Assembly: GCA_904063045.1 (NCBI GenBank)
Contig: CAJFCJ010000059.1
Coordinates: 77,763 to 141,762, forward strand
Source: Dimorphilus gyrociliatus
Taxonomy: Eukaryota; Animalia; Annelida
DNA: 64,000 nucleotides
Reading direction: 5' to 3'
Shown here: positions 45,207 to 52,080 of the stretch, piece by piece
Numbering within the stretch: position 1 is the first letter of the stretch
Layout of the letters: the number at the start of each line of letters is the position of its first letter
Program-made: the position numbers and the translations under genes
The notes under the pieces: model-generated
What the model was told of the DNA's origin: nothing
The model's database searches: none
Seen by the model: the letters and a program-made list of their open reading frames with translations, nothing else

Positions 45207-45484
45207 TTTTCTAACTTACATTCACCACACATTCAAAAATTCTAAACAACAGACAAATAAAAATAAAAACATGAAACATTTATCTTATAAACATCAAAGC
45301 AACAAAAGAGTTTCTCATGCAATGTAGAACTCAGTAAAACAACTATACAATCATCAAATACTTAGCTACAAACTCACAAACATCAATACAACCAAACAAT
45401 TTTTATGCAAGGCAGGACTCAGTTATAGAATTGATCTTAGCCTCCCTTTCAAAGGTAGCAGTAAGTGTAGCTATCTTCTAAAAA

Positions 45485-45534
45485 TGACCCTGATGAGTCT
45501 TTGCAAAAGGGGAAGACGAAACCATGGTAGGTCA
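45485..45534 (+). ncRNA. Minimal type I hammerhead ribozyme (first of 10 copies)
   Basis: UGACC-CUGAUGA-GUCUU(UGCAAAAGGGG)AAGAC-GAAAC-CAUG-GUA-GGUCA: stem I UGACC/GGUCA, stem II GUCUU/AAGAC, palindromic stem III ACCAUGGU, predicted cleavage after A45529. Other copies start at 46159, 46833, 47508, 48183, 49134, 49809, 50484, 51159 and 51834. Confidence 0.92.
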
Positions 45535-48500
45535 AAAATTCTTTGGCAATCATTTGAAAACTCAACACATTGATCAAAATAAAACATACATTCAACAAAA
45601 AAGTTCATTCTTCATAGTTGTACAAAAAGTTCTTACTCTTGCATTCCATCTTGGGATCTCCTGAAACTTTCGATGAAAGTTATTCGACTTTTGTCAGAAC
45701 TCAGATCTTAGTGTCTAGTTCAACATTATGAAAACCTAATCAGAAGTAAGGAGAGTCAAGAGGTTTGAGGAACAGTACAACTTGCACTTTACATCTCATC
45801 AACAAAAAATACAAACAAATTGAAACACAAACATAGATGCAATCATTTATTCAAATATTACAAAAATCAATATAAGACAATTTTCTAACTTACATTCACC
45901 ACACATTCAAAAATTCTAAACAACAGACAAATAAAAATAAAAACATGAAACATTTATCTTATAAACATCAAAGCAACAAAAGAGTTTCTCATGCAATGTA
46001 GAACTCAGTAAAACAACTATACAATCATCAAATACTTAGCTACAAACTCACAAACATCAATACAACCAAACAATTTTTATGCAAGGCAGGACTCAGTTAT
46101 AGAATTGATCTTAGCCTCCCTTTCAAAGGTAGCAGTAAGTGTAGCTATCTTCTAAAAATGACCCTGATGAGTCTTTGCAAAAGGGGAAGACGAAACCATG
46201 GTAGGTCAAAAATTCTTTGGCAATCATTTGAAAACTCAACACATTGATCAAAATAAAACATACATTCAACAAAAAAGTTCATTCTTCATAGTTGTACAAA
46301 AAGTTCTTACTCTTGCATTCCATCTTGGGATCTCCTGAAACTTTCGATGAAAGTTATTCGACTTTTGTCAGAACTCAGATCTTAGTGTCTAGTTCAACAT
46401 TATGAAAACCTAATCAGAAGTAAGGAGAGTCAAGAGGTTTGAGGAACAGTACAACTTGCACTTTACATCTCATCAACAAAAAATACAAACAAATTGAAAC
46501 ACAAACATAGATGCAATCATTTATTCAAATATTACAAAAATCAATATAAGACAATTTTCTAACTTACATTCACCACACATTCAAAAATTCTAAACAACAG
46601 ACAAATAAAAATAAAAACATGAAACATTTATCTTATAAACATCAAAGCAACAAAAGAGTTTCTCATGCAATGTAGAACTCAGTAAAACAACTATACAATC
46701 ATCAAATACTTAGCTACAAACTCACAAACATCAATACAACCAAACAATTTTTATGCAAGGCAGGACTCAGTTATAGAATTGATCTTAGCCTCCCTTTCAA
46801 AGGTAGCAGTAAGTGTAGCTATCTTCTAAAAATGACCCTGATGAGTCTTTGCAAAAGGGGAAGACGAAACCATGGTAGGTCAAAAATTCTTTGGCAATCA
46901 TTTGAAAACTCAACACATTGATCAAAATAAAACATACATTCAACAAAAAAGTTCATTCTTCATAGTTGTACAAAAAGTTCTTACTCTTGCATTCCATCTT
47001 GGGATCTCCTGAAACTTTCGATGAAAGTTATTCGACTTTTGTCAGAACTCAGATCTTAGTGTCTAGTTCAACATTATGAAAACCTAATCAGAAGTAAGGA
47101 GAGTCAAGAGGTTTGAGGAACAGTACAACTTGCACTTTACATCTCATCAACAAAAAAATACAAACAAATTGAAACACAAACATAGATGCAATCATTTATT
47201 CAAATATTACAAAAATCAATATAAGACAATTTTCTAACTTACATTCACCACACATTCAAAAATTCTAAACAACAGACAAATAAAAATAAAAACATGAAAC
47301 ATTTATCTTATAAACATCAAAGCAACAAAAGAGTTTCTCATGCAATGTAGAACTCAGTAAAACAACTATACAATCATCAAATACTTAGCTACAAACTCAC
47401 AAACATCAATACAACCAAACAATTTTTATGCAAGGCAGGACTCAGTTATAGAATTGATCTTAGCCTCCCTTTCAAAGGTAGCAGTAAGTGTAGCTATCTT
47501 CTAAAAATGACCCTGATGAGTCTTTGCAAAAGGGGAAGACGAAACCATGGTAGGTCAAAAATTCTTTGGCAATCATTTGAAAACTCAACACATTGATCAA
47601 AATAAAACATACATTCAACAAAAAAGTTCATTCTTCATAGTTGTACAAAAAGTTCTTACTCTTGCATTCCATCTTGGGATCTCCTGAAACTTTCGATGAA
47701 AGTTATTCGACTTTTGTCAGAACTCAGATCTTAGTGTCTAGTTCAACATTATGAAAACCTAATCAGAAGTAAGGAGAGTCAAGAGGTTTGAGGAACAGTA
47801 CAACTTGCACTTTACATCTCATCAACAAAAAAATACAAACAAATTGAAACACAAACATAGATGCAATCATTTATTCAAATATTACAAAAATCAATATAAG
47901 ACAATTTTCTAACTTACATTCACCACACATTCAAAAATTCTAAACAACAGACAAATAAAAATAAAAACATGAAACATTTATCTTATAAACATCAAAGCAA
48001 CAAAAGAGTTTCTCATGCAATGTAGAACTCAGTAAAACAACTATACAATCATCAAATACTTAGCTACAAACTCACAAACATCAATACAACCAAACAATTT
48101 TTATGCAAGGCAGGACTCAGTTATAGAATTGATCTTAGCCTCCCTTTCAAAGGTAGCAGTAAGTGTAGCTATCTTCTAAAAATGACCCTGATGAGTCTTT
48201 GCAAAAGGGGAAGACGAAACCATGGTAGGTCAAAAATTCTTTGGCAATCATTTGAAAACTCAACACATTGATCAAAATAAAACATACATTCAACAAAAAA
48301 GTTCATTCTTCATAGTTGTACAAAAAGTTCTTACTCTTGCATTCCATCTTGGGATCTCCTGAAACTTTCGATGAAAGTTATTCGACTTTTGTCAGAACTC
48401 AGATCTTAGTGTCTAGTTCAACATTATGAAAACCTAATCAGAAGTAAGGAGAGTCAAGAGGTTTGAGGAACAGTACAACTTGCACTTTACATCTCATCAA

Positions 48501-48860: not shown

Positions 48861-51800
48861 TCTAATTACATTCACCACACATTCAAAAATTCTAAACAAC
48901 AGACAAATAAAAATAAAAACATGAAACATTTATCTTATAAACATCAAACAACAAAAGAGTTTCTCATGCAATGTAGAACTCAGTAAAACAACTATACAAT
49001 CATCAAATACTTAGCTACAAACTCACAAACATCAATACAACCAAACAATTTTTATGCAAGGCAGGACTCAGTTATAGAATTGATCTTAGCCTCCCTTTCA
49101 AAGGTAGCAGTAAGTGTAGCTATCTTCTAAAAATGACCCTGATGAGTCTTTGCAAAAGGGGAAGACGAAACCATGGTAGGTCAAAAATTCTTTGGCAATC
49201 ATTTGAAAACTCAACACATTGATCAAAATAAAACATACATTCAACAAAAAAGTTCATTCTTCATAGTTGTACAAAAAGTTCTTACTCTTGCATTCCATCT
49301 TGGGATCTCCTGAAACTTTCGATGAAAGTTATTCGACTTTTGTCAGAACTCAGATCTTAGTGTCTAGTTCAACATTATGAAAACCTAATCAGAAGTAAGG
49401 AGAGTCAAGAGGTTTGAGGAACAGTACAACTTGCACTTTACATCTCATCAACAAAAAAATACAAACAAATTGAAACACAAACATAGATGCAATCATTTAT
49501 TCAAATATTACAAAAATCAATATAAGACAATTTTCTAACTTACATTCACCACACATTCAAAAATTCTAAACAACAGACAAATAAAAATAAAAACATGAAA
49601 CATTTATCTTATAAACATCAAAGCAACAAAAGAGTTTCTCATGCAATGTAGAACTCAGTAAAACAACTATACAATCATCAAATACTTAGCTACAAACTCA
49701 CAAACATCAATACAACCAAACAATTTTTATGCAAGGCAGGACTCAGTTATAGAATTGATCTTAGCCTCCCTTTCAAAGGTAGCAGTAAGTGTAGCTATCT
49801 TCTAAAAATGACCCTGATGAGTCTTTGCAAAAGGGGAAGACGAAACCATGGTAGGTCAAAAATTCTTTGGCAATCATTTGAAAACTCAACACATTGATCA
49901 AAATAAAACATACATTCAACAAAAAAGTTCATTCTTCATAGTTGTACAAAAAGTTCTTACTCTTGCATTCCATCTTGGGATCTCCTGAAACTTTCGATGA
50001 AAGTTATTCGACTTTTGTCAGAACTCAGATCTTAGTGTCTAGTTCAACATTATGAAAACCTAATCAGAAGTAAGGAGAGTCAAGAGGTTTGAGGAACAGT
50101 ACAACTTGCACTTTACATCTCATCAACAAAAAAATACAAACAAATTGAAACACAAACATAGATGCAATCATTTATTCAAATATTACAAAAATCAATATAA
50201 GACAATTTTCTAACTTACATTCACCACACATTCAAAAATTCTAAACAACAGACAAATAAAAATAAAAACATGAAACATTTATCTTATAAACATCAAAGCA
50301 ACAAAAGAGTTTCTCATGCAATGTAGAACTCAGTAAAACAACTATACAATCATCAAATACTTAGCTACAAACTCACAAACATCAATACAACCAAACAATT
50401 TTTATGCAAGGCAGGACTCAGTTATAGAATTGATCTTAGCCTCCCTTTCAAAGGTAGCAGTAAGTGTAGCTATCTTCTAAAAATGACCCTGATGAGTCTT
50501 TGCAAAAGGGGAAGACGAAACCATGGTAGGTCAAAAATTCTTTGGCAATCATTTGAAAACTCAACACATTGATCAAAATAAAACATACATTCAACAAAAA
50601 AGTTCATTCTTCATAGTTGTACAAAAAGTTCTTACTCTTGCATTCCATCTTGGGATCTCCTGAAACTTTCGATGAAAGTTATTCGACTTTTGTCAGAACT
50701 CAGATCTTAGTGTCTAGTTCAACATTATGAAAACCTAATCAGAAGTAAGGAGAGTCAAGAGGTTTGAGGAACAGTACAACTTGCACTTTACATCTCATCA
50801 ACAAAAAAATACAAACAAATTGAAACACAAACATAGATGCAATCATTTATTCAAATATTACAAAAATCAATATAAGACAATTTTCTAACTTACATTCACC
50901 ACACATTCAAAAATTCTAAACAACAGACAAATAAAAATAAAAACATGAAACATTTATCTTATAAACATCAAAGCAACAAAAGAGTTTCTCATGCAATGTA
51001 GAACTCAGTAAAACAACTATACAATCATCAAATACTTAGCTACAAACTCACAAACATCAATACAACCAAACAATTTTTATGCAAGGCAGGACTCAGTTAT
51101 AGAATTGATCTTAGCCTCCCTTTCAAAGGTAGCAGTAAGTGTAGCTATCTTCTAAAAATGACCCTGATGAGTCTTTGCAAAAGGGGAAGACGAAACCATG
51201 GTAGGTCAAAAATTCTTTGGCAATCATTTGAAAACTCAACACATTGATCAAAATAAAACATACATTCAACAAAAAAGTTCATTCTTCATAGTTGTACAAA
51301 AAGTTCTTACTCTTGCATTCCATCTTGGGATCTCCTGAAACTTTCGATGAAAGTTATTCGACTTTTGTCAGAACTCAGATCTTAGTGTCTAGTTCAACAT
51401 TATGAAAACCTAATCAGAAGTAAGGAGAGTCAAGAGGTTTGAGGAACAGTACAACTTGCACTTTACATCTCATCAACAAAAAAATACAAACAAATTGAAA
51501 CACAAACATAGATGCAATCATTTATTCAAATATTACAAAAATCAATATAAGACAATTTTCTAACTTACATTCACCACACATTCAAAAATTCTAAACAACA
51601 GACAAATAAAAATAAAAACATGAAACATTTATCTTATAAACATCAAAGCAACAAAAGAGTTTCTCATGCAATGTAGAACTCAGTAAAACAACTATACAAT
51701 CATCAAATACTTAGCTACAAACTCACAAACATCAATACAACCAAACAATTTTTATGCAAGGCAGGACTCAGTTATAGAATTGATCTTAGCCTCCCTTTCA

Positions 51801-52080
51801 AAGGTAGCAGTAAGTGTAGCTATCTTCTAAAAATGACCCTGATGAGTCTTTGCAAAAGGGGAAGACGAAACCATGGTAGGTCAAAAATTCTTTGGCAATC
51901 ATTTGAAAACTCAACACATTGATCAAAATAAAACATACATTCAACAAAAAAGTTCATTCTTCATAGTTGTACAAAAAGTTCTTACTCTTGCATTCCATCT
52001 TGGGATCTCCTGAAACTTTCGATGAAAGTTATTCGACTTTTGTCAGAACTCAGATCTTAGTGTCTAGTTCAACATTATGA

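Follow-up and report, generated by a model that had tools for sequence, protein, structure and literature searches.

The satellite described here occupies positions 45207-52080 of a 64,000-nucleotide stretch of the genome of the annelid Dimorphilus gyrociliatus (GenBank assembly GCA_904063045.1, contig CAJFCJ010000059.1, positions 77,763 to 141,762, forward strand), which is referred to as the window and in whose coordinates positions are given unless another contig is named. Its units are arranged in tandem beside a telomeric tract, and each complete unit contains a minimal hammerhead ribozyme motif. On balance, the satellite is probably the 3'-terminal module of a telomere-attaching member of the Penelope-like elements (PLEs), a telomerase-related group of mobile elements, reiterated in tandem and devoid of open reading frames (ORFs). 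This module, in which the hammerhead is combined with a 115-nt 3' block and a tip complementary to telomere repeats, was probably copied from a multi-unit RNA onto the repeats of chromosome ends.

Organization of the locus

Positions within the unit are written as q, where q1 corresponds to window position 45879. The components of the locus are the following:

44640-45206, C-rich strand on +: telomeric tract (CCCTAA/CCTAA)n of about 570 bp, distal to the array and abutting its start
45207-48761, +: array A, about 5.3 units of 674/675 bp, from q1-3 to q185
48762-48860, +: A(99) run, separating array A from array B
48861-52080, +: array B, about 4.8 units, from about q6 to the fixed 3' tip of the family (...CAACATTATGA, followed by TAACCC)
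52081-52112, +: short CCCTAA tract of 32 nt onto which array B is joined; a 5'-truncated PLE with an endonuclease (EN+) extends from 52113
46078-46408, +: one copy of the core module (q200-530), with an upstream block, the hammerhead, a variable stretch, and the 115-nt 3' block with a conserved 9-bp hairpin
46409-46413, +: inner-junction CCTAA, present once per unit (first copy at 45735-45739) and always followed by TCAGAAGTAAGG

A preliminary description, made from the letters of the window, had called the satellite telomere-adjacent, and the CCCTAA tract at 44640-45206 does abut the array. The complete units are identical except for one A7/A8 homopolymer, which gives lengths of 674 or 675 bp. 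They have about 31% GC and their longest ATG-initiated ORF is 46 aa, so that they are non-coding, in line with the earlier proposal of a separate, non-autonomous partner of a PLE.

At the A(99) run, one unit breaks off at q185 and a new array begins at about q6; no AATAAA is present within 30 nt upstream of the run. The run resembles the poly(A) tail of the template of array A and could be such a tail, captured via template switching; slippage of the reverse transcriptase (RT) and an assembly artefact are the alternatives.

Immediately to the left of the telomeric tract lie 333 N (44307-44639), and the tract may correspond to a contig start that was joined by scaffolding. Left of the N run, a teneurin-EGF/cadherin-type coding exon is found on the - strand. 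A 918-aa 'ORF' (41888-44644) crosses the N run and is hence partly an artefact. The N run, the A(99) run, and the 32-nt CCCTAA tract had not figured in the preliminary description.

Structure of the hammerhead motif

The 44-nt core (CTGATGA, helix II, GAAA, CCATGGTA, GGTC) has exactly ten matches on the + strand of the window, all without mismatch:

45485-45534, +: hammerhead copy 1 (UGACC-CUGAUGA-helix II-GAAA-CCAUGGUA^GGUCA); core start 45490; predicted cleavage after A45529
46159-46208, +: hammerhead copy 2; core start 46164; predicted cleavage after 46203
46833-46882, +: hammerhead copy 3; core start 46838; predicted cleavage after 46877
47508-47557, +: hammerhead copy 4; core start 47513; predicted cleavage after 47552
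48183-48232, +: hammerhead copy 5; core start 48188; predicted cleavage after 48227
49134-49183, +: hammerhead copy 6; core start 49139; predicted cleavage after 49178
49809-49858, +: hammerhead copy 7; core start 49814; predicted cleavage after 49853
50484-50533, +: hammerhead copy 8; core start 50489; predicted cleavage after 50528
51159-51208, +: hammerhead copy 9; core start 51164; predicted cleavage after 51203
51834-51883, +: hammerhead copy 10; core start 51839; predicted cleavage after 51878

The core was required to contain C3 U4 G5 A6 N7 G8 A9, G12 A13 A14, and the A15.1-U16.1 pair, with cleavage after H17 (not G). CUGAUGA, GAAA, the A15.1-U16.1 pair, and GUA^G are present in 10/10 copies of the window. 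Helix I is open and helices II and III are closed, the arrangement of type I. Helix I (UGACC/GGUCA) has 5 bp; helix II (GUCUU/AAGAC) has 5 bp and a U.G pair beneath an 11-nt loop; helix III consists of only two pairs (A15.1-U16.1 and C-G) within the perfect palindrome ACCAUGGU. When two copies are folded together, the predicted structure is a double hammerhead whose intermolecular helix III has 8 bp; its energy is -37.4 kcal/mol, compared with -25.6 kcal/mol for two monomers. The dimer is thus favoured by about 12 kcal/mol, and the fold of a lone monomer lacks helix III. Such dimer-type minimal hammerheads are characteristic of PLEs (PMC4209133). The preliminary description had recognized ten intact copies, each with a complete core, 5-bp stems I and II, and a 2-bp stem III in a perfect palindrome, had assigned them to the minimal, dimer-type, type-I class, and had predicted the first cleavage after A45529; each of these points was recovered here, the cleavage position being derived again.

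Two other readings of the motif were rejected. A chance motif is contradicted by the shuffled sequences, in which no match is expected (100 shuffles), and by its conservation on at least 12 contigs. A type-III fold involving the upstream AAGGUAG, taken from the alignment to the Hammerhead_3 model, was discarded: in several subfamilies the upstream GGU reads GAU, and the fold leaves helix I unformed.

Two further motifs of the window are related in kind. One, at 7837-7896 (-), keeps the core intact (CUGAUGA, GAAA, and ACCAAGGUA^GG), forms helix II from GUCCC/GGGAC with a loop of 23 nt, and has a non-palindromic helix III. About 30 nt upstream, the same strand carries the telomere-like CCTAACCCTAACC, and the motif sits just beyond a Gypsy RT-RNaseH ORF (6692-7753, +). 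The other, at 36387-36446 (-), is a degenerate hammerhead of the same general type in which GAAA has become AAAA with loss of G12, and it is probably dead.

Conservation of the satellite family across the genome

A search of the genome assembly revealed related arrays and fragments on at least 12 contigs, with 70-92% identity and periods of 606-839 bp. Since ten identical hammerheads in one young array amount to one observation, the independent evidence comes from these other loci. Nine distinct representative units were compared by mean pairwise identity, which is 82% for the block upstream of the hammerhead, 96.7% for the hammerhead itself (47/53 columns invariant), 54% for the variable stretch downstream of it, and 79% for the 115-nt 3' block. 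The hammerhead is therefore the best-conserved segment of the units across diverged subfamilies, far above its flanks. Its variation in the nine units is restricted to loop II, together with one change in helix I and one in helix II, each of which leads to a G.U wobble. Genome-wide, the 3' half of the hammerhead is found in 76 copies at two or fewer mismatches, 59/76 being perfect; some of the others carry changes in the core or in helix III, such as GAAA to AAAA. Because of the genome-wide conservation and the dimer cofold, the motif is regarded as a real, selected, dimer-type, type-I hammerhead, the self-cleavage of which is predicted from sequence and folding.

A second structured element is a 9-bp hairpin in the 3' block, GAUGAAAGU/ACUUUUGUC, located at 45672-45696 and in every unit (q468-492). 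By direct counting of variants, the other main haplotype of the family, GGUGGAAGU/ACUUUCAUC, differs at four positions with every pair kept, and the hairpin is a candidate element for recognition by an RT.

Junctions with telomere repeats

The 3' motif TAGTTCAACATTAYRAAAA is present in 51 genome copies, and what comes next is either CCTAA+TCAGAAGTA (the inner junction) or telomere repeats (the terminal junction). Terminal junctions occur once per array on C3 (three), C14 (two), C51, C53, C64, C195, and C251 (two), and further ones are that of the window at 52080 and two of the 839-bp type. Thus, at least 13 terminal junctions lie at one identical nucleotide, about 205 nt downstream of the cleavage site. 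Their orientation is invariant, the hammerhead-sense strand being followed by CCCTAA, which is the orientation expected of complementary DNA (cDNA) extended from a G-rich overhang.

Every inner unit junction keeps exactly one CCTAA, at the same position where terminal units meet telomere repeats. The sequence with which the spacer opens, TCAGAAGTAAGGAGAGTCAAG, has 44 copies, and AAAACCTAA directly precedes it in all of them; therefore, the inner junction is inherited across subfamilies: it comes from a template that already held it, multi-unit or circular, and does not arise anew in each event.

Some copies, intact at the 3' tip and truncated at the 5' end, are enclosed by telomere tracts. At the tip of C251 (locus L019, C251:22029-24122, reverse strand), a terminal telomere tract of at least 190 nt is followed by a PLE 3' fragment of about 100 nt, a telomere tract, satellite q252-530, a telomere tract, q411-530, and a further telomere tract. 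Deeper in this locus come a telomere-like stretch in inverted orientation and one more 3' block. On C14, a 50-nt satellite 3' fragment is enclosed by telomere tracts, and the arrays of C3 are layered with such tracts. As in the systems compared below, a fixed 3' end, variable 5' truncation, and interlayered telomere repeats are the marks of telomere-primed reverse transcription.

A pattern search of the genome for copies that begin at the cleavage site beside a telomere repeat gave 0 matches. Because the site is located about 205 nt upstream of the tip and no copy starts there, the hammerhead does not delimit the DNA copies. Contigs of a public run (2017, type unrecorded) aligned to 45879-46552 carry relatives of the unit, and, as independent data, their loose ends enter telomere-like repeats at this same place, at unit positions 520-524; several of them break right after helix I, where the subfamilies diverge.

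Candidate partner reverse transcriptase and the adjacent PLE

The PLE next to the satellite (52113-64000) encodes an RT and a GIY-YIG endonuclease, is 5'-truncated, and is arranged in tandem with a 5.53-kb period. Pieces of this PLE follow telomere tracts elsewhere too (loci L016 and L022), with other 5' truncation points, so that this family is also found on telomere repeats. Short telomere-like tracts are held within the adjacent EN+ units themselves (54186-54197, 54241-54255, and 56008-56030).

A BLAST search of the satellite unit against the rest of the window found nothing in the adjacent PLE and only two other hammerhead motifs, in agreement with the absence of similarity noted before. 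Searching the genome with the protein of the adjacent PLE revealed several RT classes, the most distant of which has 29-32% identity to that protein and open frames of 971-1707 aa at six loci, namely in the regions of about 165-173 kb on C76, 30-49 kb on C3, 176-198 kb on C68 (two), 52-60 kb on C51, and 258-266 kb on C70. In 6/6 of these loci, the hammerhead module of the satellite lies 2.0-3.2 kb downstream of the PLE RT on the same strand. The order at L022 is the end of the partner ORF, the 3' untranslated region, the module, the CCTAA junction, the spacer, a second unit with its module, and a telomere tract. There are 40 Pfam matches to GIY-YIG in the genome, and 0/40 fall within the six partner RT loci; for the partner ORF in L022, a Pfam scan of its C-terminal 237 aa likewise gave no match.

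As judged from these sequences, the satellite is most likely a reiterated 3' module of the large-ORF PLE family and would depend on the RT of that family. The suggestion that it is copied by the RT of the adjacent PLE is accordingly not upheld: the likely source is a different PLE family with the same module in its own 3' region, and the adjacent EN+ PLE is probably not the RT source.

Proposed mechanism

The copying may be envisaged as follows. The + strand would be transcribed, with a preferred 5' end of the RNA about 200-230 nt upstream of the module. The G-rich 3' end of a telomere could then pair with CCUAA/CCCUAA at the tip of a unit, and a PLE RT acting in trans, most likely that of the large-ORF family which has the same module and no GIY-YIG match, would extend the chromosome end along the multi-unit RNA, after which telomerase would recap the new end. 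The hammerhead likely cuts multi-unit transcripts as a double hammerhead, and/or it may serve as a 3' fold for recognition by the RT; it is a selected part of the module, and the ends of the DNA copies are not set by the ribozyme. The sequences show the ribozyme motif and its conservation, the fixed 3' junctions, the inherited inner junction, the 5'-truncated copies between telomere tracts, and the module in common with a PLE family; that the + strand is transcribed, that the telomeric overhang acts as primer, which RT does the copying, and that the ribozyme cuts in vivo are inferred.

Several observations weigh against this scheme. Given the 333 N, a true chromosome end at the locus of the window is unproven, and the locus may be internal to a scaffold; assembly consensus may also contribute to the near-perfect identity of the units. 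The helices of the hammerhead hardly vary and show no compensatory double changes, and a family that is still young could account in part for its conservation. At the gathering score, Rfam gave no match over the whole window, hammerhead models included. At E<=10 the only matches, all sub-threshold, were to hammerhead models (RAGATH-1-hammerhead at 21.5 bits with a cut-off of 56.3, and Hammerhead_3 at 20.9 bits with a cut-off of 48.5), so that in the covariance-model search proposed earlier the best matches are indeed hammerhead models while all of them stay below the gathering score, as is expected for a hammerhead with a minimal helix III. The hammerhead is located about 205 nt from the tip, with the variable stretch and the conserved 3' block between them, and does not adjoin the tip as in Athena and the Terminons. 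The putative clade of the partner RT and its putative lack of an endonuclease are read from match coordinates and the Pfam scan. Among public sequencing runs searched for the satellite, there was one run of unrecorded type (as contigs) and no RNA run. Finally, endonuclease-driven insertion into telomere repeats would be expected to leave identical footprints.

Alternative explanations

The form of the template is the point on which the nearest alternative differs. In a retrozyme cycle, which extends the model of the preliminary description, the double hammerhead would cut multimers into 674-nt monomers, which transfer RNA ligase would circularize; the telomeric overhang would prime at the CCUAA of the circle, and rolling-circle reverse transcription would lay down many identical units per event. 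The arrays would then be genomic footprints of this rolling-circle copying, in which circular RNAs processed by the hammerhead are reverse-transcribed directly onto the telomeric overhang and their own single CCUAA repeat serves as the built-in template. The cycle agrees with the fact that units are identical within arrays while arrays differ from each other, with array lengths of 10 units in the window and 18 on C3, and with exactly one CCTAA per inner junction. That no linear copy starts at the cleavage site is as expected if the cut RNA was circularized, a dimer-type hammerhead suits the cutting of multimers (PMC4209133), and rolling-circle cDNA synthesis from circular RNA is a published hypothesis for retrozymes without long terminal repeats (non-LTR retrozymes; PMC7229834). 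However, three array 5' ends lie within about 10 nt of one another (array A of the window at q1-3, array B at about q6, and C3:9372 at about q671), and a single-unit copy starts about 230 nt upstream of its own module, a similar distance. This clustering suggests a defined 5' end of a linear RNA, which it fits better than random stops on a circle. Moreover, the ORF of the autonomous element already precedes a module-junction-module arrangement, so that a linear read-through RNA suffices, and PLE insertion in vitro initiates inside the RNA of the element itself without a need for hammerhead cleavage (PMC11167929). With few array 5' ends sampled, the linear read-through template is somewhat more likely than the circle; the retrozyme cycle is considered a serious though unlikely alternative, and the reading of the arrays as rolling-circle footprints is accordingly tentative.

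The second alternative is amplification at the level of DNA. If a single unit or a PLE 3' end had been retro-added to a telomere once and then multiplied by unequal crossing-over, replication slippage, or break-induced replication, the hammerhead would be a passenger from the PLE 3' region. Recombining satellites are common in subtelomeres, the identity of the units fits recent homogenization, and multimeric retrozyme repeats are enriched at the chromosome termini of Xenopus (10.64898/2026.07.22.740005). Nevertheless, such amplification leaves unexplained why at least 13 arrays of different subfamilies and periods share one end nucleotide against telomere repeats, why 5'-truncated single fragments are sandwiched by telomere tracts, and why the hammerhead is kept at 97% identity as its flanks drift to 54%; it is therefore thought improbable. 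Site-specific insertion into double-stranded telomere repeats, driven by an endonuclease in the manner of TRAS/SART and supplied in trans by an EN+ PLE, possibly the adjacent one, would require no priming at a free end. It predicts the fixed 3' end, the variable 5' end, and the telomere flanks equally well, and EN+ PLEs of the family in the window are themselves 5'-truncated against telomere tracts in the same orientation (52113, L016, and L022). Yet the satellite has no sequence in common with the adjacent EN+ PLE and shares its whole module with the family that has no GIY-YIG match, and the layers at C251 continue right up to the terminal telomere tract; of the explanations weighed here, this one is given the least credence, and it is very improbable.

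Other features of the window

Interstitial CCCTAA tracts of about 2.5 repeats are present in otherwise unrelated sequence to the left of the N run, at 17284-17300 and 41341-41358 (+), and may be the tails of old PLE-type insertions. An unrelated 172-bp tandem repeat, with a 343-bp higher-order period, is found at 40293-41079 in 4.5 copies with about 78% identity.

Implications and comparison with known systems

The family joins two separate lines of work, namely hammerhead-bearing tandem repeats (the non-LTR retrozymes), for which the route of mobilization has only been hypothesized, and telomere-attaching PLEs. The latter are known mainly from bdelloid rotifers, fungi, and protists. The fixed junctions, the inherited one-repeat junction, and the shared module together offer a concrete and testable copying mechanism for such repeats, in which retroelements would build chromosome ends alongside telomerase in an animal with TTAGGG repeats. 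The small genome of the host provides a system in which the priming site, the form of the template (linear or circular), and the function of the ribozyme can be addressed. If the less favoured rolling-circle reading were true, a ribozyme satellite and a PLE RT would lengthen the ends alongside telomerase in a canonical TTAGGG animal, and the arrays would be the first direct trace of retrozyme-type circles returning to DNA. A literature search found no paper that combines Dimorphilus gyrociliatus with Penelope and none that links retrozymes to 'subtelomeric'. Nor did the literature searched describe ORF-less arrays directed at telomeres whose units measure 606-839 bp, carry the ribozyme at about 200 nt from the tip, and meet at a one-repeat inner junction, in a host with TTAGGG telomeres.

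The Athena/Terminon and Coprina elements were reportedly studied by Gladyshev & Arkhipova in 2007 and by Arkhipova et al. in 2017. PMC8557442 and PMC6431247 describe endonuclease-deficient PLEs that attach to G-rich overhangs via reverse-complement telomeric repeats beside a hammerhead and form 5'-truncated head-to-tail chains, and the marks of telomere-primed reverse transcription are described there for Athena, Terminon, and Coprina. The satellite resembles these elements in that its sense strand is the C-rich strand with reverse-complement telomeric repeats at the 3' tip, in the hammerhead of its 3' region, in the 5'-truncated copies with short telomere tracts between them and the head-to-tail chains at ends, and in a candidate partner RT family whose loci have no GIY-YIG match. 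It differs in that its unit is ORF-less and reiterated, in the distance of about 205 nt between hammerhead and tip, whereas the hammerhead of Athena and the Terminons is immediately before the tip, in its inner junctions with a single CCTAA, and in its host, an annelid with TTAGGG repeats instead of a bdelloid rotifer, fungus, or protist.

Among metazoans, the non-LTR retrozymes (Cervera & de la Pena 2020, PMC7229834) are non-coding and AT-rich tandem repeats in which every unit has a single type-I hammerhead; a recent preprint traces them to the terminal repeats of PLEs (Li et al. 2026, 10.64898/2026.07.22.740005). The satellite is similarly low in GC, non-coding, and tandem, with one type-I hammerhead per unit whose weak palindromic helix III implies dimer action, and retrozymes, too, have been proposed to descend from the terminal repeats of PLEs as non-autonomous elements and to be mobilized by PLE RTs. 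The designation of the array as retrozyme-like in the preliminary description therefore stands as far as the tandem non-coding type-I hammerhead units are concerned, but not for the unit size (606-839 bp, outside the 170-400 bp described) or for the DNA ends, which are not at the ribozyme site. Integration of the satellite appears to be telomere-directed with a fixed 3' tip, and an autonomous element with its module can be identified in the same genome. Retrozymes are expressed as linear and circular RNAs of unit length with ends at the ribozyme site; such RNAs of the satellite are hypothetical.

Newt satellite 2 and the Schistosoma Sm-alpha repeats share with it the type-I core, the 2-bp helix III in a palindrome, and the double hammerhead with an extended helix III, according to Forster et al. 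1988 as cited in PMC4209133; those repeats, however, are dispersed or resemble short interspersed nuclear elements and lack a fixed telomere junction. Copies of the retroelements HeT-A/TART/TAHRE of Drosophila and TRAS/SART of Bombyx likewise share one orientation at chromosome ends, onto or into which they are placed head-to-tail, and are truncated to varying degrees at the 5' end (PMC5537684). These elements are of the type of long interspersed nuclear elements, use poly(A) or endonuclease-specified targets, and have no ribozyme, whereas the satellite alternates with telomerase repeats.

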